From: Takakia lepidozioides
Lineage: Eukaryota; Plantae; Bryophyta
Length of the DNA stretch: 64,000 nucleotides
Direction of reading: 5' to 3'
NCBI GenBank assembly: GCA_030704615.1
Contig: CM060731.1
Location: 3,348,001-3,412,000, forward strand
Position numbers and translations under genes: made by a program. Of the stretch, positions 1-50,089 are shown one piece after another. Under the pieces are notes generated by a model that ran no database searches, was not told the DNA's origin, and worked only from the letters and a program-made list of their open reading frames with translations. The stretch's first letter is position 1, and each line of letters starts with the position of its first letter.

Positions 1-2150
1 CTGTGCATACCGTCTGACAAATCTTCTGTAATAACTGGTTTGTCCAAGGAATCTCCTTAGACTCTTAACATTTACTGGTGGTGGAGAGGCTTTAATGGCC
101 TCTGTCTTTTTGGGATCCACAAGAAGTCCCCTCTTACACACAATGTGTCCCCAAAGCACCCCTGAGTTCACACAGAAAGTACACTTCTCTGGATTCAGGC
201 CCAGACCTCTCATCCTGCATCTGGCCAAACATAACTCCAATTTATGCAAGTGCTCATTCTTAGAGCTGTACACACTGAAATCATCCAAGAACACCTGCAT
301 GTAATCAGATACTCATGAAAAGATTCACTTATCACTCTATGAAAGGTTGCTGGTGCATTACAAAGTCCAAAAGACATGACTTTGTATGCATAAGCACCCC
401 AGTCTGTGATGAAAGCTGTCTTTCCCTGGTCTGCTTCTGCCACTTGCACTTAATTATAACCACTGAAGCCATCCATGAATGAGTACATCTCATGGCCTGC
501 CACAGTGTCCAATACCGCTTCTGTGAATGGCAAAGGGAAATGATCTTTCTTCGTACAAGCATTCAACTTCTTATAGTTCACACAAACTCTCAGTTTACCA
601 TTCTTCTTGGGAACTATCACAATGGGTGACAACCAAGTTGTATACTCTATCGGGTATATAAACTTAGCCTCAGCCAACTTCTTGATCTCTTCTCCAACCT
701 TTTGTGCATAGTTGGGATTCATTCTGTACCTTGCCTGTTTGATTGGTACTGACCCTGGTTCCAGTTCAATCTTATGCTGACAGATCTCAGGTGGTATCCC
801 TTTCAGATCCTCGTAGCTCCAAGCAAATACATCTCTGTATTTGATTAACAGACTCTTAGCTTCCTCAAAGAATTCTGGCTCCAAATCAGCCCCTATCTTC
901 ACCATCATCGGTTCCCTTTCAGTTTCCACATTCACTTCTCTCACTTGCTCATCAGCTGTGATTGTGCAACCAGTCACCACTTCATCCTATAAACTCACAG
1001 TGGCTGGTTCATCTAGGATTTCCATTTCTCCCTCTCTTTCTTCATAGAAATGTGGTGGGTAACTGCTTGTTTCACCCTCAATTGGTGTTGCCGTCACTAC
1101 ACCACAACAGATACCTTTTAAACAACTTAGGCCTTCTAGTTGCAACTCTGCAACCTGCTCCCACTCTGGGTGTGCAGCAAACAGGGTAGCTTCCTGCTCC
1201 TCATCAAGTCCTCCCCTCCAGTCATACTCCCTGACCCCTCGAGGTCTTCTCGTAACAGGTAATCTACTAGATTTCTTAGTGGTGATTTGTATCTTGTGCA
1301 TCCCATCATGCACAGTTAGTAACTGGGAATTCCAGTCATGGAATACCCTGGCCTGTTTCAGCCACGGTCGACCCAGCAATAAGGAGTAAGCTTCCATGAC
1401 TTCATCCATTTTCCACACAGTTACTGTGATCTTAAAGATCATCTTTTGAATCTGTATCTTAACTCCTCTTATCAATCCCAATGGCTGAACACTTCTTTGA
1501 TCTGCCATTGTTACTGTAAATGGGGCTGGTTTCATGTTACTTAGACCAAGCTTCTGCCTTAATTGGTCTGTCATGATATTCACTCTAGAGCCTTCATCTA
1601 TCAGTACATCAGTTAGTTTTGTGCTTCCAATTCTCAATTGGATTACTGGCATAGAATCATCAAAGTCCATGACTGTTTCTCGCCCTTCCGGCTTCACATT
1701 ATAACTGGTCACCTTGCTGTTCAGGTCTGTGTTCCCTGTCACATGGGCAATCCGATTGATTGCTTGATACAGCCTGTATCTACAATAAGGTGCCACAGCC
1801 AATAGCTGTCCAATGGTAATCTCCGCTTTGGACTGACATATTACTTCAGCCAAAGTCCCTTCATTACTCTTCATTTCTGCAGCTTCTTTCTTCCCTTCAT
1901 CCTCATTCACTTCCTCTTCTCTTTCAGAATCAGAGGAATCTGCCATAGGAATATCAGTACTCTTCTGCATTTCCCTTATGGTATCTGCCACTTCCTTGTG
2001 CAGTTCCTTCTCATCTCTCCAAGCCTCATCATCTTCAGGCACATCACTGCCATCTTCATTATCATTATCTTCCTCATCTACTGGAGGTATTATTTTGGCT
2101 TTGCTTCTGGTTACTATCATTGTACTTACTTCTGGTACAACACATGGCCT
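1..2150 (-). mobile_element. Ty3/gypsy LTR-retrotransposon gag-pol remnant (aspartic protease + reverse transcriptase), disabled, running off the window start
   Basis: ORF 987-2270 has a protease-like VLIDEGSRVNIM and YSLLLGRPWL. ORFs 450-980 and 210-449 have the RT motifs WLSPIVIVPKKNGKLRVCV, YSFMDGFSGYN and MSFGLCNAPATF; MQVFLDDF is in a shifted frame near 275-300. Protease-then-RT order fits gypsy. In-frame stops at ~987 and ~450. The ORF N-terminus beyond ~2150 looks non-homologous. Confidence 0.92.
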
Positions 2151-3097
2151 AACCATGTGAGCTGCAAGGTAGCCTATACTATATGCGCACACAAATGCAT
2201 GCATATGGAGGAATGTATGCGTGCATACAAATTTTAGATATGCATAGGAACAAATTTTTATGCACAACACTTAAATAAGGGTACCCAAAAAAAAATAAAA
2301 AATTGTGATTCATCTAATCTTAGGGTCCATAGTCAAAATATCAAAGAATGGAATAAGAATATTATATATAGAATATTCCATGTTCATTGTATTATTATTC
2401 CACATGGGTGAGTGTAGGAATGGGAGAGGAACATGTTGCTTTTATGGCTTTCCAACATGAGAAAAAGGGTCGAAAAATTAAAAAGTGACGAGGCACGGCT
2501 CCTTGTTAGATACAAATGGTGAAGGTACGGGCTCTTCCAATGGTGGGAGTCTAGTTTGAAGTTCAGAATGGAGCAATGCTAAGGGAATGCTACGGAGCTT
2601 GTTACATAGGTTTTGCAGTATCTATATATCTATCTTCTGAAACATTTTTATTTTACAAAAACATAATGTCCATCAGAGATAGAACCCACAACCTATCGGG
2701 TATCAAGCCTAGTTCATACCACTACACTACCCATTCAGACTTGAAACACTAATGAAATGAAACACTAATGAGATAAAGATAGTCACCCTGTGTGTACATA
2801 ACATGCCACAATACTCATAAGGGTTGATCTTACTAATGATGAAATTTGATAGTGCTGAAGTGCATGTCGAACTTGCATAGTAAAGGGATCTATGAAATGC
2901 AGTAGAGATCTATGTACAAACTATTACATAGATAAATCAAATGACAAGAAGATAACATGAAATCTGATTTCAACACCATGTCATTTGCCCCCATTTGTTT
3001 TACCTTACACTAGAGAGAAACACATGTATTATAAAAAATAACAAAAAATTCGGACTGACAATGAGGACAATGTATTGTATATGTAATTTCTAATTAC

Positions 3098-4400
3098 CTA
3101 CATAACATCATCAACTGATACTTCGTCATCCGTGTCATAAGCCTGTAATTCAGAGGCATACACATCCATGAAAGCCTCAACTCTACGCAACCTATCCACG
3201 GATTGTCCAACAATAGCTGCTCTTCGGTCAAACAACAGATCATTGGAAAGACCTACATCACGTTGTTGATGTATTGAATGCAAAGCTTGGGACTCGGCAT
3301 ACGAAGGTAGATAAAACGATGAAAGAGGACTTTGGGGTAGACTATCGTAGATGGTCCGCACAATCCCATCACTGCATCACACATACATGTATACTTATGT
3401 TAACAAATCAAATGGGAATGGTTTGCTTTGAGATTGCAATAAAGGGAATGGAGGCGAGACATACTCACTAGGAAGTACTGCCGAGATGAAGACCAAGCTT
3501 GCGCGCCACCTTAGGAGCGGGGGGTTCCAACAAACTCACAGGACGTTGAATGGTTGGAGTTACCGCAGATGCAACCAAAACGGGTTGAGTATTTTGAAGT
3601 GCAGAGAGACGTGCTGTATACAACGTCTGGTCCCCCTCAAGACCAAATACGTGACGTCCAGACTCGCGGGCAGCAATAAATGTAGAACCTGCAGGAAAAA
3701 AACATGCAATGATGATATTATATTGGATAACAGTTAATGATCAGGAATCAGCTCAGAAGATTTTAATTACAAAATGGAGACCAATGCAAACCTGTGCCAG
3801 CTGTGAGATCCAAAATGCGGGAGCCAGGAGGTGAGCATGTCTCCAACAACACTTGCATGAAACGGGACTACGGTCTCGCGCACCCCTCCAGGCTTGTTGA
3901 GGAGTTTGCATGGGTAGTGCAACATCTGGAATGTGGTTGTAGATGACATCCAACTCAACAGGGTCTGCAAGGGGGTCCACAACTTTGCCAGACTCACGCA
4001 GTTTGAACAGTCCTCCTTGCTTGGTGAGGACATGGGCGTGGAAGAACATGGTCTGTTAGACGTGCCATTTCCACAAAAACAGTGCACCCAGATGGTTTAA
4101 TAATATGTATGAGAGTAGGAAGATGAAACATCAAACAATGAGATATTGAAGAGGGATGATTTTTACCTTTCCTGTCTGAGTGTGTAGAGGGGTGGTATTG
4201 ATGCAAGTATATTTCCTTGATAATACGGAAATAGAGTTGCCCCTAGAGTAAGAAAAGAGCTCCAATGCAAAGAAATCATCGGAGCCCTGCAAGAACACCA
4301 AGCATCCATTGTCATCCAACAGGTCATTAGCAATGGAGAATGCATACTCCCAATACCGTTTATCACGCTATGGGTGCAGAAGAAGGTGATGAATGCAGAT
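3098..4400 (-). pseudogene. Degenerate spliced N6-adenine/N4-cytosine DNA methyltransferase-fold gene (copy 1, homologous to the MULE cargo gene at 42388-45771)
   Basis: GT-AG exons ~4400-4167, 4052-3792, 3688-3469 and 3371-3098 give RYWEYAFSIANDLLDDNGCLVFLQ / TMFFHAH..DVIYNH..WRGARDRSP(frameshift ~3862)FMQVLLETCSPPGSRILDLTAGTG / STFIAARESGRHVFGLEGD / PLSSFYLPSYAESQALH. These read as amino-MTase motifs X, I and II. Motif IV was not clearly recognisable. Confidence 0.75.
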
Positions 4401-5166: not shown

Positions 5167-5400
5167 GCAAAAAATTTGAACTCTGTGACTGCCCCGCAGC
5201 TATTGATTATTCTTGAAGTGACAGTTCGTCCTAATCTCGCCTTGATTTCCTGTTAACACATGTGCTGATGTGAGCTTCAAGAAGCAAAAAATTTGAACTC
5301 TGTGACTGCCCAGCAGCTATTGATTATTCCTAAAGTGACAGTTCGTCCTAATCTCGCCTTGATTTCCTGTTAACACATTTGCGGATGTGAGCTTCAAGAA
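5167..5400. repeat. 117-bp tandem duplication covering the peroxidase 3' end
   Basis: 5167-5283 and 5284-5400 are near-identical, with AAG microhomology at the junctions. Confidence 0.95.
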
Positions 5401-6648
5401 GGCAGACGAGAAGGCTTGGTAGAAGCTATTTTCATCACCGGCAAAACCTGCCACAATGCCTGCTGTTCTCGGATCTTGGCCAAGCTCTGAGTCGATGGTG
5501 AAGAGGCCCCGCCCGTTCATAACATCTTGATAATACTGGTTGTCAAACACCAAGTTGGTGAGGTCCGTGGGGATGATGGTAAGGTTGGTCAATGATGATG
5601 TCAAGCAAGAAGCGCGCAGCTGACCACCAAATATCAAACCCAGTTGTGGATCACTCTCTGACAGCCGGTTCTGGACACTCACACAGTGCCCTACCCCAAT
5701 TGTGTGAGCCCCTGCAGCACCAGTTAGACAGCCAGCATATCAGCAAACTTATCTCCACTGCAGACCATAGGTGCAGGTTGAGGAAGATCGCAACAAGAAT
5801 CTAAATGATGATGCAAATCAAAATTTCATAGAATGTAACACCTCGCAGTTCATACCTAGGATAGCAACACTCTCTTCAAGGTTCATTCCAAAGGATTTAA
5901 AGACATCGATGAAACCGTCCACACTGACAGAAACTTTTGGCAATAGTGCATCCGCTCTCAAGTTGCTGCCAGTCGTAGCATCGCGACGCCCCAAGAGAAT
6001 TGGGAAGACTGGGCCTCCTGTGAAGGACACCGCATCCCGGCCTGCCATTGCAATTATGTCCGCACACGACACAGTGTTTGGACAAATGCTCTCCAGGACG
6101 CCCTTCACACGGTCAATAAACTCGAATCTTCGAACACCAAAATTGGAATCGGATACCATTTCACTTGTCATATCAGCGGTTGAATCCAGCATAATCGATG
6201 CATCACAGCCCTGCACACAACAGCGGATACCTGCACGTATTAAGGAACTGTTGGCAACTGTTACAAATATAGGGCATCTCAAGGCGTACGCGACGGAAAC
6301 TAGAGAGCTTGCTACTATACAGCACTGTGAGGGGCTTCAGCAAACTCTGAGCTCAAATGAGCTCTCCAATAGGCCCAGTGCAAGAAACGAAGAAGAAACT
6401 AATGCAGGGCCCGAGCAGGAGCACGCAGTTACCTGGACTCGACAGTCATGAAAGACCAGGCGAAGGAGGGCAGCAGGTGCAGTGGGGTCAGTTGCCAAGC
6501 TGGCATCTATAGTAGCCTTGGCCACGGATTCGGCCATGGAGCAGCTGTTGTTGTAGAACCCGAATTCTAGCTGACCCGTTGTTCGGCCCAAACTGAGTGT
6601 AATAACCACCACCACAAACAAAACTGTGGGCCATGCTTCTCTCAGCAT
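5317..6648 (-). CDS. Class III secretory heme peroxidase, ~321 aa; exons 6648-6433, 6210-5856, 5711-5317
   Basis: Signal peptide; distal motif LLRLVFHDCRVQ|GCDAS; VSCADII; GRRD; proximal G|AHTIGVGHC; FDNQYY; GEIRTNC. Two GT-AG introns with consistent phase. Confidence 0.95.
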
Positions 6649-40445: not shown

Positions 40446-42387
40446 ACATAATTCGCTTACCACATCTGGTACAGTAGATAGAGCAAGTTCATGCAGGGAG
40501 TCACCGCCGAATTACTTAAAATCTCCTCGTAGCATTGCCGTAAAATCTAGAAATTTCCTTAGGAGTGTTTTGTTGTAAAGAAAATAAATATTCGGCACTT
40601 CACTACCGGATCAGCCTGCCAAGTACGGTAGTCCTTGTTTTTGCCCATAATACGGGTATTGGATGGGTATTGCCAGCCGGTCCGGTTATTAACCCTAGTA
40701 TTGGAACTGCAAATGCCAGCCGGGTCGATTATTAACCATAGTATTACAATAGCCAATACCGGGTAGGTTATTCACACTACAAGATATGAGCGTTTTAGGA
40801 CTACGACTTTGGCGGAGTCATAAAAACTGCACTAGGTAAACGACTACAGAGCGTTGAAATGCGTTGCAGTCATAGTTTTATGACTCTATAGTAATGGATA
40901 TCACTACATAACTTTTTTTTTTAAAAAAAAAAATTGCTAATAAGGTTGTAATCGTGAATAGAGAAGAGGGCTGGGACTTCGCGTTTTTTTGTCTCCTGCG
41001 CCACAGCACGTAGCCGAGGGATGGAACGCGATGATAGCAGGATATGCAGGGGCGTGGGATGGAGGCGTTGAGCAAATGATGCAAGAAAGAAAAGAGGAGG
41101 AGGAGACGAGACGAGACGAGACGAGGAGAAGCGAGCTCGCCGTTCTTGGGAGAGTCAGCTTGGTCTTAGCAGGCATGTTTCAATCTCTGCCTACTCAGCT
41201 GCACCATAGTGGTTTGATCTCACATACCAACAGACACAAGCAGCACACACAAGAGGTCATTTTGGGTTGATGGTCGGTCAAATCCTCTATTGGTCAGGAC
41301 ACGAGGTCAAGGACAATGTGGTGAGGGCACCTTCTTCTTCAACCTATTTTAGCCTGTGTTGCCCTCTCATCGGACTCGGCCGCAAGATGCATATTGAATT
41401 CTATAAGTTAGGTCGTTGGGTAGATCTGTGGTGGTTTGGAGTGACTTTGGCAAGTTACTGCCAGTGTGGCAGCAAGGAAGTATCTAAAAACATATAACAG
41501 AGGTGAGGAGAAGCTTTGGGGTGAACACTTTCCGACCCCAGTCAATGGTGGGACAATGGAGACAAAAAGGTGAATGCCTGTTGGATTACAGAGAGAAGCA
41601 GATGCATTTTAGATTGTGATAAGTAGGGTTGGGGTGTTTTGGGAAAGAACTCCACACCAGTATGGTTACAGGGATGCCTCGGCGTGAGCCTAGTCACGTG
41701 AGCGCGTGAGCGCAACTGCGCTCACGCCACGTCACCTTGCGCAAATGCCACGTCACGTTGCGCAAATGCCACGTCACGGGGCTCACTCCACGTCATCACA
41801 CGTGAAGGCCGCGTCACCACGCGCCCAGAAAGAAGTGGAGTGTATTCCCGCGGATTGGCACCCTTTACCGCGGAAACAAGCTGGACGACATAATAAAAGG
41901 CATTGAATAAAGGATGGATGAATGTACAGTTGGATGATAAACAGATGGATGAGTGTGAAAAATAAATGTAGATGGATGAATGAGGGATGGATAAGAGTAA
42001 AATGGATGAATGTATAATGGATGTTGAGCAATGACAAAAATTCATGACAGGAAGATGCATGACCAAAACTTTTGACAAATGCACAACGTATATGAAATGA
42101 GTGTGGAAGGTTTGTGGGGTGGATTAAAGAGTACAGAGGATGAATGTACAATGGATGTTGAACAAAGGAAAAAATTCATGAATGGAGCACGCATGAATAC
42201 ACTGTAGATGAATGCACAATGGATATGAGAAGAGTCAGGGAGGTTTGTGAGATGGATTCATACATATTGCAATTTAAATGAAAGTTGATTATGTGATTAT
42301 TATTTGTTCTAAAGGAACAACTACGGTGGAGGAAGGGGATTCAACGTTTTCCAGATAGTATGAAAATGAATATTAAAAGAATACAGT

Positions 42388-45300
42388 TCAGTCTGACTCA
42401 GAGTCAGTACAATGTATCCCCGCTTCCTCTGCATCTAAGTCTATGTATTTTAGAACACCGGATCCACGCTGGATACACCTACGGCTGGCCACTAAAAGTC
42501 AGGGGATAGGGACTCGGCCGCGTGAAGTGCTATTGCTTCGGCATAAACAGGAAGCAGAAAATTGGAAAGGGGGTTGTTGAAAACAGACTCGCCAGAAATG
42601 ACTGTATCTCCTGAAGATCCACCGCTGCCTTTCCTGAAAGACAGCCTGAAAAAGTTATTACTGTAACTTTGATGTTATTGAGAAATTGAGTATGACTCCC
42701 AAAGAGGGTTTAGCACTTACTCACATGAAAAGTCGTTGTCGACCTGCTTATCTTCGGGATCGTCATCATTTCGAATTTGAATCCGATCAGTCTATGTGCC
42801 TGAAGTGGAGCCAGACAAAAGGGGGAGGAGCACTGTGTTGTAGAGGTCAGAATCACCCTCCATGCCAAAAAGGCTTCTTCCGCCTGTCTTGCATGCATGG
42901 TAAGTTGCTCCTGCACCACACAGGAGGACATGAACAGTTTGGTGGGGGGGATTTAAGCAGATGAAACTGTTGAAAGAAAACCAATTCGGAAGGGAAAGAA
43001 CGAACCTGTGGATACAGAAAGATCGACCACCCGTGCAGAGCGGTGGCTGCATGATTCCAGCAGTATTTGCATGAACGCTGGGGACTTTTCCTTTGCACCT
43101 CTCCAGGGAGTGCCATCTGGTCTCTTCAGAGTCTGACTGGACTGCATGAAGTTGTACAAAATGTCATCGACATGGGGCTCATAGGGGGGGTTGACGAAAC
43201 AACCCTGGTCAAAAATCTCAAAGCTGCGGATGGAGGATGGTGTCTTTGAGGTGCGAATCCTCCGCAGGCAGATCGCCTCGAACATCCTCGTCTGCCAAAG
43301 ATAGCAGGTTAGTGTGGTAAACACAATGTATAGTAGAACTATGTACATCGGCTATTCAGAACTCAGACACAAAAAAATCATTTTTATCACGAATCGGTGA
43401 TGATCGTTGTCGATCATAACAGATTCTACTAGAGTGGAGCTGCAGAGAACATTGAAACTCATCATGAAAGCACAAGCAGAAGGGAGACGACATACCAGCT
43501 GACCAGGGAAACCCCCTTTCACAAGGTAGAGGCTGTTCACATAATTCCATGTGCGCAAAACTTCAAACCTTGAAGACTTGAGGTATGATGCCAATGCCCG
43601 ATGACTATCATTGTCACATGACTGAAAAAGCAAAAGTGTCCCTGCATCAGAGAGGAAGTTATTACAGAACCCGAATACCCAACTCTAGTAGTTGTCCTCG
43701 AATTTGTTCCAGCCTGGCGTCTTGCCCTTTGGAAGAACTTCTGGCACAGCCTGGCCATCCGGAATGTCGAGAATGACAATGTCGGCCACATAAGTTTTCT
43801 GCACACCGCACACGAAGGTGGGACCTGTGCTCACCTGCAACATACATGTTTTTTATAAGAACGAAAGCAAGAATGTTTTCAAAGAACGAGACTGAAATAC
43901 TGCCAACGAAACTTTCAGAGAAAAAGGAAAGAAACTGGAATTCTCACCAGATTGAGGAATGAGATTATATTGTCCCAGGTAGGCGATGGCACCCCAGTGT
44001 ATCCTCTCTTTCGACTCTGCATCATTGACAGCCAACCCTCATTAACAATTTTCATCTCTCCTGCCGAATCAGAACGGGAAGGGTGTGGCTTGGCATCGAA
44101 CACGCACTGAACAGTGCGGGTATATCTTCCAGTAGTAAAGTCCTGCGCACTCTCCATCTCCTTTTCTTTCTCATTCCCCTTGTCTTTTTCCTTCTCTTTG
44201 GACTTGTCTTTGTCATTTGGCTTTGCTGGTGAGATGGCTATGACATCAACAGCCTTGTCTTTTGGTTTGCGGCCCGCCTTCTTTCCCTTCTGCGGCGTTC
44301 CCTGAGCATCAGGCTCCTTGGCAGCCAATGTTGCTATGTTTCGTTGGTACTCTTCGTCAATCAAAGGCGCCAGCATCTCAGCGTTATTGTTCAAGTATTT
44401 CATATGTTATTCTTGAAAGATCGTGTGCTCCGGTGGGCAGTCAAGGTACCACCCACAGTCTCTGAAGTGAGAAGGACTCCAGTCGTTCAATATCCCTGCA
44501 GTATACATGGTTGGATCGTTTGCAGGGTCCGACCACATGTCAAGATAGTCTGGAATTCCGCTCAGGTGATTTCCTTCCATAAGCACATATTTCGTGTACC
44601 TGAAAAAAGGAGATAAATCCCAACCCACAAAAGCGCTCAGTGAGTAAGATGCAAGTAGAACAGAATGAAAAAAACATAGATTGAAATGGCTCTGAGAACT
44701 GCTCCAAGGACCTTTCAGGACCACACGAATGCTCCAGATGTGAATGTCGTCAACGCCATTCAAAACATTCCATTCAATGATACTGTAAATACACCCTAAT
44801 CCAGGTGAATGCAAACTATCGTTTTGGAATGACACAGACATAGAAGTGAATGTCGTCAACGACATTCACTAATCAATCCTAATTATTCCTCAAATGAAGC
44901 AAAATCACAGGATGGAAATCATAAACTCGAGTAAGGAACCCTCCAGGAAAACTCAATGCACATTCATAACGAACATATCACTGAGGACCTCACAACAACA
45001 CTGTATGTGAATGGCGTCAACGCCATTCACAAAAATACCAACAAGGAACCAATTACTTAGCTCCCAATCCATGTAAATTCAAATTGTCGCTGTTGAATAA
45101 TACAGACACAGAAGTGAATGTCGTCAACGACATTCACTTTGGATTTCTCATAACAGAGCTTATCAAGCCTCCAGATTCCTCGCAAGAGGCAAAAACAATG
45201 CAGAACAACTGAATGTCTGCATTGACATTCAGCAATATGAAGTGAGGAACCCTCACTGTAACCTCTATGGACATTACAAAAATTTACATAACTCTGAGGA

Positions 45301-45771
45301 CCTCTCAACAACTCCGGATGTGAATGTCGTCAACGCCATTCAAGGACATTATCAATTCTAATCAGGGACACTATAATTACACCCTTAGATCCTAACCAGG
45401 TGAATTCATATACTCGCTTAAGAATGACTCAGACAAAGAAGTGAATGTCGTCAACGACATTCAATCTGGATCTATGATTGCAATCCTTATGAAGCCACAT
45501 TTTTTCCCAAAAAAAACAGTAGAGTTTCAAGTATGACATTGCACCTGTACACAACTCGCATCATGGCCCACTCTCCTCCAACCTGACTGTCAAAGTCGTT
45601 GGACGGTAAAATGTTACCATCTTTGGAGAACTTCCGGAAAAAACAGTATCTCCAGGTGAGACCTCTCCACTTCCTTATGTATGCCTCCAATGACATTTGG
45701 GGAGGGGAAACAATCGAAATGTTCAGGTCCTTCAAAGTCTGATCCAGCACAATGACGACGCGCTTTTCGAG
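42388..45771 (-). pseudogene. Spliced beta-class N6-adenine/N4-cytosine DNA methyltransferase-fold gene inside the MULE (copy 2), with nonsense mutations and the 5' end missing
   Basis: Exons 45771-45583 (tentative), 44599-43948, 43834-43496, 43291-43006, 42910-~42725 and ~42645-42388. Motif IV-like ADIVILDIPDG (DIPD at 43757-43768), then FLSDAGTLLLF, then WRGAKEKSPAFMQILLESCSHRSARVVDLSVSTG|ATYHACKTGGRSLFGMEGD (motifs X, I, II). In-frame stops at 44407, 43685 and 42792. Confidence 0.8.
44740..45464. repeat. Array of six 24-bp palindromes GTGAATGTCGT-CA-ACGACATTCAC plus one variant
   Basis: Copies start at 44740, 44846, 45007, 45114, 45320 and 45441. A variant CTGAATGTC-N6-GACATTCAG is at 45209-45232. 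Confidence 0.95.
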
Positions 45772-45844
45772 CTGCAAATTGTATATTTGTCAGAATTGCA
45801 AATAAGATACTCATCACATACTTGAAGAGAAGAAAACGGCATGT

Positions 45845-48017
45845 TTGAATACACACCTGCCAGGTCAAGGTGCCATCAAAGTTTTTCTTTTCAAAATGTC
45901 GACTGTTGGGGAGGGCAGTGGGGTTAGCCTCGTGAAGCGGATGCAGAAGACTGAGGACTTGCAGAACTGTTTTCTTATGTTTGATCATGTGAAACGAGTG
46001 AAGGATTGGACAACAATGGCTTGTCATGTCTACGATCCAGTGTACCAACGAGTTATGACAATTGCAGTTTGTGACATGCAATCCAAGGATACGGAATCCC
46101 AGAAGCTCATGTGGAATTCCCTGATACGTGTCATGGGCTGCCATCTCCAAATTTCGCAGGTTTCATGGCGGATAGTGCTCAAGCAAATTTCAATGCTGTT
46201 CGTATTGTCTTCGGATCGGGCGACCCAAAAGTTCCAATGCGAGGAAGAGAGCGTACATGTCTATTCCATTGGACACAATCTCTGGAAAAACATACAAAGT
46301 CGGACATCAAACCAGAGATGCAGACTCAGCACCGTAAATTGTGCAAAGAGTACAAAGATGCTAGAACAATGAAGGAGGCGGACACTTTGTTCCAGACAAT
46401 TCGTGCCTAGTGGTTCTCTTCTGGAGCTGCATCACTTGAGAGTATGAGAGCATTGGAAGATTGGCTGGCGTTTTGGCACTTCCGGTATAGACAGTGGGGA
46501 GCAGCCATGCCATTGGTACGAGGCTTATATTTATTGTTTTTTCATACATTTGTTTTCCATTTTATTGTGTCCTCGCTTTCTTTATGTTGTTTTCTGTTCA
46601 CTGTTTTGAAGTGTGGTTCTGCACTTTGCAGAACATGTCCATTGAGGAAATGGCGGACATGCCATCTTGCAATTTGGCAGAAACTGTGCACAACGCATGA
46701 TTGCAGCAGTCTGGGAAACGAGGTCGGGATTTGTATGTGGCAACAACAGATGATTTGATATGTGCCTTGCAACAACAAACCCGATACTGTGATTTCATAC
46801 GAGGTGGGGTTGGTGGCAAGGGTCCGGACAAATGGGAGTTGATGTTGCGTGCTGCAAACAGATCTGGGGATCCAATCAAGATAGCACGGGCGGTGAGCAT
46901 GTATGCCCAGGGAACGCCATTTGTTTCTAGAGTTCCACATCTTGAAGGGGAGGAGAGATTCGGCTCCTGTAAGAGGAAATTGAACACTCCACCTGGTTCG
47001 GATTCAGATTCCCACAGGGCAGACCGTGATAACTTCTCGAAGCCTCGTGTTCCCCTGCATGATAGCTCCATGTCCGGAACCTCCATTGTGGAGGAACCTC
47101 CAACACGACGGCAAACTCCAGCATCAAACAGTGCCACTGAAATGGTGCAGGAGAGAAACAACCCCCTTGATGTGCTTGAGTCCGCATGCCCCGACCACGT
47201 TTGGCACATAGAACGCACAAGTGTAGGGTCTCATGTGAAATGTACAGCGATCAGGGCAACTAATTTCGAGAAGTGCACTTCATCTATATCCAGAGGTGGT
47301 GCCCGAACTCCTACTCCGACTTTCACGGGCTTGATGCGTCCATACGGTCAACCAGAAGCCAAGAACCACAAGTTCTGGTTCTGCGCAGATGATTGTGCCA
47401 GATGTGTGCATGGAACTGTGCGTCCTTCCGTAGTGATGAAGCCATCTCCTCCAACCGTTTGGCCCATGAAGGTGGGAACACATCTCAGCTTTCGGGAGAT
47501 TGAAATGCTGGAGGAGGCAGGTTTTTCCCTTGCGAGACAACCCCAACTCCATGCATGTGCTACTACTTCTGCGTCCTCCCGGGTCCCCCCGACAAATCTT
47601 GACTTGTGGCCAACCAAACGAGATGGAAAGCTCGTTCGGTGTTTCCCTCCAACCGCTGAACACTTTGGCAAAGTGGAGTCCGCAAGAATGCTCCAAGCTC
47701 GTGTTGGAAGCACCACGGAAGTATCTGATCCAGGATATGGTCGGGTATTCACAATCATCACTTCCACATCTGCTGTTCATGACAGGACCTACGACATCAC
47801 GGTTTCCAATTTCCCCAATTGCATATGTCCTGATTTTGTGAATATGCTATCAACCAGTTTGGGCAAGAGAGGTAAATTCATACCCTGCAAACATTTGTAT
47901 TTCATATTTTTGAAGAGGATGGTTTGCGATCCCAAACGTGACAACTTCATTCACCAGGCCACTATGAGTTTCAACGAGGTCGATACTCTTTTGCAGCGGG
48001 ATACAACACATGGGTAG
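45845..48017 (+). pseudogene. MULE DDE transposase with a C-terminal SWIM zinc finger, 5'-truncated and disabled
   Basis: Candidate catalytic residues in MFDHV (D), FMADSAQAN (D) and CNLAETVHN (E); the MULE CxxH signature RTCLFHW; SWIM CICPDF...CKH. Intron 46516-46631; frameshift ~46137; TGG-derived stops at 46388 and 46698. Confidence 0.85.
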
Positions 48018-48659
48018 CATCAACTATGCAATGTGGTATGTGGACGACCATGATTTGAAATGTGTAATTCACATCAATTCGTCGGCGGTGCAATGATATG
48101 GCCTCCAACTATACGGAGTGAGCTCTGAGTGACAACTTTTAGGTAGTGCACATTTGTCATTGCACCGTTCGAAGTCTACATGTCTTGCTGTCGCTATGCA
48201 CTACAATCATCTTTTGAAGATGATCCTAACTCTCATTGTTATTTGAGGAGGGAGGAAGGTCTTCCCGTGGCAGTCTTTATGGCGCACACTTTGTGAGGAT
48301 ATTTTTTCGTCCTCGTAATTGTAAAAGTGAAACAAGCATTTGTAATTGCACAATGTTGGATGGTGCAATTGTAGGCCTCAACGCTCGTCTTGATTATATT
48401 TAGGCAAGATTCCCTGCATTAATTCCACGGTCATAGGACCATCCACGGTTATAGGCGGCGCATATTAATGCTGACGTGGCAGATGACGGACAATGTCACA
48501 TCATCATTTACCGCCACATCAGCATGCTGACATGACGCTCACGCCACGTCAGCGTGTGTGCAGGCTCACGCCACGTCACTCCGGCGTGAGCGTACGCTCG
48601 CGCGGTCACGCCATTGCGTCGTTGGTATGGTTAGGGTGTTTGCTGGTAGAATTCTAGGT

Positions 48660-49290
48660 TGTCAGAGGCATGGATAGCTGAAGGAGCAGGGATAGAGTGT
48701 GGGTCAAGATTCATCCAAGAGGGCTGGATTTCAAGCTCCACATTACCTATGATTCCATGTGGAAGGATAGCTACAAGAAACCTACATGGGTAGATGGTCA
48801 ACTGGTAGCGGCAGCAGCAGCGGCACAATTGATAAAGTCAGGCACTTCTACTGAAGGCACCTCCTTCAACACATTTCACCTGTTTTTCCCTCTTATCAGA
48901 ATCGGCCCTAAATTTCCATGTTGAATTCTACAAGTTAGCTGGTTGAGTGAATCTAGTTTGGAGTGAGTTTGACATGATACTGCCAATGTGACAATAGGAA
49001 AGACGCAATTTAGTATAGGAACTAGTGTCATAAGCTGAGTTGGGTGTCTAGGCTGTTATTGTCAGCTGCTAGCAGCAAGACAAGGATGAATGCATGATTT
49101 GTGCAGACACATTGATAGCTGAAGGAGCAGGGATAGAGAGTGGGTACAGATTCTTCCAAGAGGGCCAGATTTCAAGCACAAGATTACCTATGATTCCCTG
49201 TGGATCAATAGCCACAAGAAACCTGCATGGGTAGATGGTCAACTAAAGGCAGTAGCTGTAGCGGCATAGTTGATAAAACCAGGCATCTCA
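48660..49290 (+). repeat. Diverged ~190-bp direct repeat pair (~48665-48845 and ~49105-49285)
   Basis: Both copies share GATAGCTGAAGGAGCAGGGATAGAG...ATTACCTATGATTCC...ATGGGTAGATGGTCAACT...TTGATAAA. Confidence 0.8.
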
Positions 49291-49349
49291 ACCGTGACCA
49301 CAACTTCTGGAAGTGGATCAAGAGAGGGAGTCCACAATGCCTCTTTTGG

Positions 49350-50089
49350 CACTTATGGGCATGTGAAAATGCTTTGTGAGGCAGGCAAACTGACAGAGGC
49401 TCTACAGACTTTAAACCAAGGAGGCATTTCAAGGTGAAAAGTCTGTCTCTTGCATAAGTGCATCAAGGTGAAAGGCCTAGAAGCTGAAAAGCAAGTGCAA
49501 ACTCACATTATCCATAGTGGATTCACACCAAATGTTTTTCTCCTCAACACCCTTGTCAACATGTATGTTAAGTGCGGGAGCATCATGGATGCTCACCAAG
49601 TGTTCAACAGAATGCCTCAACGATCTCCTGTGCAAGCCTGGCAGCTCTGGAAAAGGGCAAAGAGGTGCATGGTGCAATCGTCAGAGCTGGAATCGTACTA
49701 GATGTGATCCTGAACAATATGGCTAAACAAAATGTGGTATCGTGGAGTGCGATGCTCGAAGGGTATGCACAGCAGGGGCGCGGGATGGAGGTTTTGGACA
49801 CGTATGAGCAATGATGTGTGAAGGGATGAAGCCCGACCACATCACATTTGTGTGCATTTGCAGTGCGTGTGCAAGCCTGGCAGGCTTGGAAAAGGGCAAA
49901 GAGGTGCATGGCGACATCGTCAGAGCTGGAATCGTACCAGATGTGATCCTGAACACTGCCATGGTGGACATGTATGCCAAATGTGGGAGCATCGAGGATG
50001 CAAAGGGAGTGTTGAACAATATGGCTGAACGAAATGTGGTGTCGTGGAGTGCGATGCTCGCAGGGAATGCATCTCTCCGACAATGGTAG
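49350..50089 (+). pseudogene. PLS-class pentatricopeptide repeat (PPR) gene remnant
   Basis: GFTPNVFLLNTLVNMYVKCGSIMDAHQVF, NVVSWSAMLEGYAQQG, PDHITFVCICSACASLAGLEKGKEVH and NTAMVDMYAKCGSIEDA, broken by deletions and frameshifts. Confidence 0.9.

Follow-up and report, generated by a model that had tools for sequence, protein, structure and literature searches.

A dead Mutator-like element of Takakia lepidozioides, probably from a bryophyte family whose accessory gene has a predicted ParB/Srx exon and methyltransferase fold

The stretch analysed here, hereafter the window, comprises 64,000 nucleotides of the genome of the moss Takakia lepidozioides (contig CM060731.1), and all positions and strands, (+) or (-), are those of the window. 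It holds at 41669-48624 an element which is probably the dead remnant, shortened by an internal deletion, of a Mutator-like element (MULE) from a two-gene family known so far from bryophytes. Intact relatives have two divergent genes, a transposase of MULE/SWIM type and a multi-exon accessory gene, whose product would run from a ParB/Srx-fold exon through a helical middle and a lysine/glutamate-rich (K/E-rich) linker to a C-terminal permuted amino-methyltransferase fold and a short conserved tail. That the methyltransferase (MTase) fold is real and of beta class, and that the gene is a conserved passenger of the transposon, can together be held with high confidence. The original prediction saw in this gene a DNA methyltransferase that may write N6-methyladenine (6mA) or N4-methylcytosine (4mC). 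The protein is most likely no canonical 6mA/4mC DNA writer, judging from a catalytic tetrapeptide that is replaced and from motifs on the S-adenosylmethionine (AdoMet) side that are kept.

A spliced gene on the minus strand

The expectation of a spliced gene on the strand opposite to the transposase is borne out. Contigs of run X8, RNA-like according to a guess made by software, were aligned to 42600-48100 (5,501 nt). They skip introns A and B, both of which show CT..AC ends, that is GT..AG on the minus strand, and a third segment at about 43290-43495; they also suggest, within the limits of that guess, that related copies are transcribed. All four introns in the window have canonical GT..AG ends, and the five exons, once joined, give a reading frame of 531 codons interrupted by two stops. 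The last intron, D, has such splice sites too, but is retained in the single X8 contig crossing it (contig 17). Its position and the change of frame across it recur in the second copy of the gene in the window and in loci L005 and L012. The gene is laid out as follows.

45545-45777 (-): exon X, with the conserved block ..YIRKW....W..; found by tblastn to positions 1842-2069 of L001, its frame fitting the phase of intron A; upper boundary uncertain, the copy being broken off here
44600-45544 (-): intron A, 945 nt, GT..AG, skipped by X8 contig 19
43948-44599 (-): exon Y, with a conserved C.WYL(D/E)C block, the K/E-rich linker and the N-terminal lead-in of the MTase domain; from X8 contigs and tblastn
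43799-43947 (-): intron B, 149 nt, GT..AG, skipped by X8 contig 18 (CT..AC ends)
43496-43798 (-): exon Z, the catalytic-side half of the MTase fold, with DIPD at the motif IV position (43757-43768), then PGWN and LSDAGTLLLF; from the family profile, aligned to the DPPY of CcrM
43292-43495 (-): intron C, 204 nt, GT..AG; X8 joint 43289/43496 and splice sites
43006-43291 (-): exon W, a variable region followed by the conserved PWRG.KEK.P.F...LLE....(V)VDL..STG (motif X, motif I); from tblastn and family alignment A2
42911-43005 (-): intron D, 95 nt, GT..AG, phase 1, splitting motif I after S-T-G; splice sites read
42792-42910 (-): exon V, from the second half of motif I to motifs II-III (..ATYHACKTGGRSLFGMEGD..), ending at a stop; from tblastn with P0177 518-550 and a canonical acceptor

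The peptides on which the original prediction was built are all present, namely DIVILDIPD, LSDAGTLLLF, KSPAFMQILLESCS and VVDLSVSTG joined to ATYHACKTGGRSLFGMEGD. When read through its stops (as X), the spliced product shows phmmer matches to family proteins along almost all of its sequence (P0196 and P0082, E 2e-43; P0177, E 6e-33; the Ceratodon protein P0106, E 6e-31), and it is the relative P0177 that has the predicted Rossmann amino-MTase fold described below.

The window carries a second, more decayed relic of the gene at 3098-4400 (-), with exons like Z (in part), W and V and a C-terminal tail. It reads ..ILDLTAGTG, then STFIAARESGRHVFGLEGD.. beyond an intron positioned as in the focal gene; near this relic, no transposase homology was found. 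A short conserved tail, ..LP.YAE..A..., follows the MTase domain as a separate last exon at L009:2695-2979, at L012:2253-2438, at the C-terminus of P0106 and at 3098-3361 (-) of the window; it was not located in the focal copy.

The C-terminal domain is predicted to have a beta-class methyltransferase fold

The C-terminal domain is, according to profile searches and structural models, a permuted, beta-class, PF01555-type amino-methyltransferase fold, in keeping with the catalytic-motif-first order originally proposed. Profile A2, a 30-sequence family alignment searched against all PDB sequences, recovered CcrM (E 2.4e-5 over 205 profile positions), then the DpnA-type M1.HpyAVI (E 1.3e-3), N4C-methyltransferases, a type III Mod subunit and TTHA0409, all of PF01555 type. 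Aligned by hhalign with Escherichia coli YhdJ, the same profile gave a probability of 86% (E 5e-6) over the motif IV block.

The AlphaFold model of P0177 residues 270-596 has a mean predicted local distance difference test (pLDDT) of 74, with a good core and about 75 poor C-terminal residues. With this model, Foldseek retrieved CcrM (E 8e-9) as well as M.BceJIV, M1.HpyAVI, M.MboIIA, MTA1 and M.PvuII. VIA-align gave Z scores of 13.9 for CcrM (207 residues aligned), 13.6 for MboIIA, 13.2 for the rotifer N4CMT and 12.3 for RsrI, and in the ESM Atlas fold rows ten of ten clusters contained PF01555 in 100% of their members. Exon Z alone has amino-MTase Rossmann families as language-model neighbours (0.89), which we take as a lead only. 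The permuted order, with the catalytic region N-terminal to the AdoMet motif I, is seen both in the alignment to CcrM residues 30-242 and in the order Z, W, V of the window exons.

The catalytic motif is replaced throughout the family

In the alignment with CcrM, the family A-D-x-P-E-x-L lines up with A-D-P-P-Y-N-L. Among 177 aligned family sequences, D (131) prevails at the first position of motif IV, ahead of E (18), Q (12) and N (8). The second is I, V, Y or L and in none of them P, while the third is P in 154. At the fourth position E (101), D (50) and K (12) are found, so that E or D make up 85%, and Y, F, W or H are found in none. The replacement motif, D-x-P-[ED]-[GN]-L-P-V, is strongly conserved and is met in the window as DIPD; since its acidic residue is maintained family-wide, it does not reflect random decay. 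Stacking of the aromatic residue on the flipped base is among the features that define amino-MTase chemistry.

The motifs on the AdoMet side are kept, as PWRG.(R/K)EKDP.F...L......GD.V.D..A.TG followed by ..AC...GR....LE.D. Motif I reads D-(L/V)-x-A-(S/G/N/A)-T-G, then GR and E, against the D-P-F-x-G-S-G-T-T of PF01555; it aligns to the CcrM motif, in a part of the model that is of low confidence. An NPPY tetrapeptide at 43181-43192, in exon W, was considered as catalytic motif and rejected: it lies in a variable loop, is not conserved, and is replaced by VGTD in L005 and by other residues elsewhere.

Because (D/N/S)PP(Y/F/W) is replaced by D-hydrophobic-P-[E/D] across the family, the protein is probably not a canonical 6mA/4mC writer. 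On these sequence grounds we lean, with some reserve, towards a non-canonical or non-catalytic role, in which it would bind DNA or chromatin or have a regulatory task for the element, instead of being a canonical methylase of base amino groups.

The original proposal, that the gene is an active DNA N6-adenine/N4-cytosine methyltransferase marking DNA for self-marking, anti-silencing or control of transposition, would agree with a fold, a motif order and AdoMet-side motifs like those of active beta-class DNA MTases, with the D and the second P of motif IV being mostly kept, and with the purifying selection on the family and the apparent transcription of related copies. Moreover, eukaryotic PF01555 enzymes can write DNA marks, as do N4CMT (PMC8885841) and MpDN4MT1 (bioRxiv 10.1101/2021.02.12.428880). 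However, the canonical aromatic is found in none of the 177 sequences and the first P is never P, whereas the canonical motif is intact in the two eukaryotic 4mC writers that are known, reading TSPPY in MpDN4MT1. Versions with a disrupted motif are in addition described, in an extract of a review of eukaryotic amino-MTase clades, as probably inactive for many METTL14 representatives and likely inactive for the MTase domain of DIRS1 (PMC4738411). We therefore regard 6mA/4mC writing by this family as unlikely.

Alternatively, the domain could be an active enzyme working on another kind of substrate (a small molecule, RNA or an amine of a protein, for example), in which case a positively charged acceptor would be held by the acidic residue. 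The strong conservation of the replacement motif, the retained AdoMet-side motifs and a ratio of non-synonymous to synonymous substitution rates (dN/dS) below 1 would suit this idea. It is purely inferential, however, and the conservation is expected equally of a binding-only module; we know of no precedent for it in PF01555, and we rate it as still less probable than DNA methylation.

The gene is a lasting passenger of the transposase lineage

The head-to-head pair of transposase and MTase-like gene recurs in four further loci belonging to three other element lineages, with transposases down to 38% identical to that of the window. The Logan contig L001 (transposase 72% identical) has exons X and Y, a ParB-like exon and a full transposase. 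A contig of the ENA (L004/L005; transposase 38% identical) has exons X to V arranged as in the window, together with the ParB-like exon, its gene bearing two nonsense mutations of its own. In Ceratodon purpureus, L007 and L008, which are near-identical and lie on different chromosomes, contain the transposase and the ParB-like exon along with the genes annotated as KAG0624017.1 and KAG0605740.1.

Searched among 1.84 billion representatives, the exon-Z profile matched 225 proteins at E<=1e-3. Most matches are exon-sized, some are long open reading frames (ORFs) of 430-810 amino acids, and they include the two Ceratodon proteins as well as KAL3675109.1 of the liverwort Riccia sorocarpa. Between L012 and L013, which are 3.7% apart, dN/dS is 0.41 (18 synonymous and 25 non-synonymous changes). 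As the pair recurs in other lineages and dN/dS is 0.41, the MTase-like gene is a long-standing, selected passenger of the transposase lineage and not a one-off capture.

A one-off capture or a nested insertion had been named from the outset as what could overturn the proposal. A gene lacking a lasting tie to the transposase, whether captured in the manner of Pack-MULEs, inserted, or a neighbouring host gene, might be suspected from the window gene, which lacks its 5' part and lies only about 80 bp from the transposase remnant, and from the Ceratodon gene, annotated as an ordinary hypothetical protein. Yet order and orientation recur in L001, L004/L005 and L007/L008 next to transposases 38-72% identical to that of the window, both genes of the window lie inside one unit bounded by a target-site duplication (TSD), and the two Ceratodon copies sit near-identical on different chromosomes, which leaves this explanation with very little credit. 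That decayed sequence resembles a methyltransferase by chance might be argued from the silence of Pfam, which found no methylase or transposase family in the raw window ORFs, from the 131-amino-acid window ORF, which returned no homologue (given length limits and the decay of the copy), and from a phmmer search of one exon against the PDB, equally empty, but independent sequence-profile, profile-profile and structure searches converge on PF01555-type enzymes and make it practically negligible.

The ParB/Srx exon and the palindrome arrays

Intact relatives have an upstream exon, absent from the window copy, with the conserved block ..F.V.(D/E)GNHR..AW... This exon is, by structural modelling, a ParB/Srx fold. 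In its AlphaFold model (pLDDT 77), the top 36 Foldseek matches are all of ParB/Srx fold, with sulfiredoxin as the best (E 5e-3), followed by Noc, CTP-bound ParB, KorB, PadC and SbnI. An exhaustive VIA search of 48,161 representative PDB chains gave eight at Z>=5, all eight of them ParB/Srx proteins (top Z 7.9). At the sequence level the G-N-H-R motif is the only sign of ParB: the exon has no Pfam match (PF02195), and exon profiles against PDB sequences gave nothing meaningful. It ends at a GT donor in the same codon phase at four loci, and this conserved donor suggests that it is an internal exon.

As leads only, the language-model neighbours of the ParB/Srx exon at L008:8718-9200 are Ascomycota DUF3723 clusters (0.95-0.96), unnamed cnidarian proteins and ParB_N (0.91). 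They hint at a ParB/Srx-like module shared with other eukaryotic mobile elements.

The introns and upstream regions of the family contain private arrays of palindromes, that of the window being:

44741-45463: the 22-bp palindrome TGAATGTCGTCAACGACATTCA, present seven times with 0-4 mismatches in a tandem unit of about 300 bp, all within intron A; from a repeat search

In L001 a different palindrome, ..TCAACCTTGCGT NN ACGCAAGGTTGA.., is repeated six or seven times, in the intron that corresponds to A and in the surroundings of the ParB exon, and L005 has three long palindromes upstream of its own ParB exon; such arrays thus recur in the family. Palindrome or short-tandem arrays of their own, with sequences unlike those of the window, were noted at L001:870-1150 and 3600-3940, L005:7965-9134 and L008:6941-7405. 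A parS-like role of the palindromes for the ParB/Srx half of the protein is a conjecture.

Transposase and ends of the element

Two features describe what is left of the transposase.

45857-48017 (+): transposase remnant, the C-terminal 60% or so, frameshifted near 46131; from ORF reading, tblastx, 41 homologues and MULE-type features of the L001 core
47820-47903 (+): SWIM-type zinc-finger motif CxC...CxH, read by eye; the orthologous stretch of L001 passes Pfam

We assign the transposase to the Mutator-like class because of the 9-bp TSD, the SWIM motif and the MULE neighbours found by a language model. The latter are MULE (PF10551) clusters of the ESM Atlas, retrieved with the L001 core at 0.94-0.95. 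Pfam SWIM (PF04434) scores 21.2 bits on L001 against a cutoff of 19.6, and no SWIM was reported by Pfam on the window transposase ORF. The 41 homologues were obtained with the C-terminal ORF. The Mutator-like nature of the element in the original prediction is thus upheld through the TSD, through the SWIM of the 72%-identical L001 and through MULE-type features, but only the C-terminal part of the transposase is left in the window.

A 154-nt transposase stretch, 46306-46459 (+), occurs in runs X8 and X9 with two mismatches, at high depth and with non-matching sequence on both sides. Possibly it is an exon whose splicing partners are missing from this copy or have diverged in it; it could also belong to another transcript.

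The element forms a 6,956-bp unit starting with CAGGG... and ending with ...CGTTG. Its limits are marked by the following features.

41660-41668: left copy of the TSD GTATGGTTA, read directly, identical to 48625-48633
41669-41689 (+): left terminus CAGGGATGCCTCGGCGTGAGC; as a terminal inverted repeat it is imperfect, with about 14 of 21 bases matching the reverse complement of the right end
41719-41800: left subterminal repeats, four copies with the core CCACGTCA; repeat search, family D4
48470-48583: right subterminal repeats with the core CCACGTCA / TGACGTGG, as at the left end; repeat family D4
48604-48624 (-): right terminus, reverse complement CAACGACGCAATGGCGTGACC, paired against the left end
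48625-48633: right copy of the TSD GTATGGTTA, read directly

The two TSD copies are exact over 9 bp and both abut the ends of the element, and the ACGT-core subterminal repeats CGCTCACGCCACGTCA (family D4) are common to both ends. Of the TSD-bounded MULE with CA...TG inverted repeats that had been proposed, the TSD is therefore firm, but the terminal inverted repeat is weak.

Decay of the window copy

The copy had been called disabled, and comparison with L001 agrees.

45778-45856: junction of an internal deletion of about 4.4 kb relative to L001; by tblastx, window positions 45711 and 45860 match L001 positions 2006 and 6487, respectively

The lost segment comprised the ParB/Srx exon and two others, the intergenic region and some 450 residues from the start of the transposase. 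Premature stops lie in exon Y (44407-44409, where other copies in the runs have C.G) and in exon Z (43685-43687), and a 10-bp deletion near 46131, where run X6 has the 10-nt CATGGGCTGC, shifts the frame of the transposase. A 20-nt difference at 43212-43233 was considered as further damage to this copy and rejected, since its frame there agrees with that of the family; the deletion therefore sits in the transcribed X8 copy. The window copy is a fossil and can do nothing itself.

Setting of the element

The insertion site lies in a tandem or dispersed repeat of about 441 bp, with units 79-83% alike on both flanks (48663-49292 and 41390-41480). A paralogous empty site was sought in these flanking repeats, and none of them spans the element junction. 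Just to the right of the element a pentatricopeptide-repeat gene was recognised by eye at 49450-49701 (+). Exons of a class III peroxidase-like host gene, also read by eye, are found at 5317-6648 (-); both genes fit a land plant. Long terminal repeat (LTR) retrotransposon ORFs occupy 210-2270 (-), with a 427-amino-acid gag/protease-like ORF and reverse-transcriptase fragments.

Discussion

Several observations weigh against the picture of a MULE family with a ParB/Srx and MTase-fold gene of non-canonical function. The Pfam MULE core (PF10551) is unmatched on the L001 and L003 transposase cores, even at E 10. Scores in the family stay below the PF01555 gathering level of 26.7 bits, the best being that of P0177 (20.8 bits, E 4e-4), and the Ceratodon protein P0192 is likewise sub-threshold (15.5 bits, E 0.017). 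In the P0177 model the AdoMet-side C-terminal part is represented by few sequences and therefore has a pLDDT below 50 (residues 251-310). The ParB/Srx exon lies outside the Ceratodon annotation, which begins downstream of it, so that a single transcript with the MTase exons is putative. No helix-turn-helix or other palindrome-binding module was identified in the family. With D-x-P-E, the site could still be capable of transferring methyl groups to a substrate of some kind. Finally, a prokaryotic donor was not found: the best tblastn match of the domain against phage genomes has an E value of 0.09. The matches at this level are all annotated DNA methylases of Gordonia phages, and hhalign to one of them gives a probability of 15%.

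The accessory gene probably derives from a prokaryotic or phage amino-methyltransferase gene that would have been carried for a long time by the transposase lineage. A ParB-methylase fusion is a possible ancestor, and prokaryotic proteins in which ParB_N and N6_N4_Mtase are fused exist. More likely than a canonical DNA writer, the protein is an accessory factor through which the element binds DNA or chromatin, comparable to METTL14, a non-catalytic partner with an amino-MTase fold. Its ParB/Srx half may direct it to the element's own palindrome arrays, where it may help transposition or oppose silencing.

We also entertain, as an improbable extension, a system of MULE self-recognition in which the ParB/Srx domain, gated by a nucleoside triphosphate, would load at the palindromes and deliver the D-x-P-[ED] enzyme to a non-canonical acceptor in DNA, RNA or a chromatin-protein amine. 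If true, such self-recognition would mark the element's own chromatin and let it escape silencing or license its transposition.

Transposons with chromatin- or DNA-modifying genes show how selfish DNA manipulates the epigenetic control of its host. To these the family adds a lineage of bryophyte DNA transposons that keeps, under purifying selection, a gene of probable prokaryotic origin and putative ParB/Srx and methylase fold together with palindrome arrays. The catalytic motif being rebuilt and not randomly lost, the choice between pseudo-enzyme and new activity becomes a testable question. The palindromes as binding sites and the kinship of plant PF01555-type genes, such as MpDN4MT1, with transposon cargo are testable too. 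Intact Ceratodon copies and the established genetic toolkit of mosses make these experiments feasible.

Comparison with known systems

With the beta-class enzymes of PF01555 (CcrM, M.RsrI, M.MboIIA, M.PvuII, YhdJ), the moss family shares the predicted fold, the motif order IV-VIII, X, I-III and, at the level of sequence, the AdoMet-side pattern P..L...L......GD.V.D....G...A....GR......E.. It differs from them as a eukaryotic, spliced and transposon-borne gene, with D-[IVLY]-P-[ED] in place of (D/N/S)PP(Y/F/W) and scores below the Pfam gathering level.

MULE accessory genes are known in mudrB of MuDR and VANC of VANDAL elements, and C5 methylases carried by retrotransposons are known transposon-borne epigenetic enzymes. 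DAM-type adenine methylases in retrotransposons have been described in a 2026 preprint (bioRxiv 10.64898/2026.05.21.726589), and TET/JBP genes in fungal DNA transposons (PMC12730594). Like the moss family, mudrB, VANC, DAM and TET/JBP are cases of a non-transposase gene kept by a transposon lineage and plausibly managing host chromatin, but none of them is a ParB/Srx protein with a beta-class MTase fold. The DAM elements, moreover, are retrotransposons, and their enzyme is of alpha class with a preserved catalytic pocket.

The bdelloid N4CMT (PMC8885841, PMC10406627) and MpDN4MT1, the latter also from a bryophyte, similarly represent a prokaryote-derived beta-class fold in a eukaryote; N4CMT is stated to have no eukaryotic homologues (PMC8885841). 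In contrast to the transposon-borne moss family, which lacks the canonical motif, both are host genes with canonical motifs and demonstrated 4mC activity. The family had also been proposed as a possible reservoir for domesticated plant amino-MTases; MpDN4MT1, with its TSPPY, differs from it in the catalytic motif.

The same review extract offers two further parallels. Phage MTases of ParB-terminase (ParB-Tls) loci (PMC4738411) likewise combine a ParB/Srx-type function with an amino-MTase on a mobile element, but the catalytic motif of the moss family is altered and the phage match by tblastn is as weak as given above. METTL14 and the MTase domain of DIRS1 resemble the family in an amino-MTase fold with a substituted yet conserved catalytic motif, and DIRS1 sets an example of an amino-MTase domain, probably inactive, being carried by a transposon; they belong to other clades (MT-A70 and PCIF1-like), and differ in transposon class and in partner domain (PMC4738411).

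In the full-text literature we found no published account of a MULE with a gene of ParB/Srx and beta-class MTase fold, and the extract of the clade review leaves such a transposon-borne clade unmentioned (PMC4738411). Transposon-borne, prokaryote-derived methylase domains are thus known as such, and what is new is the ParB/Srx and MTase architecture, its host range and the rebuilt catalytic motif.

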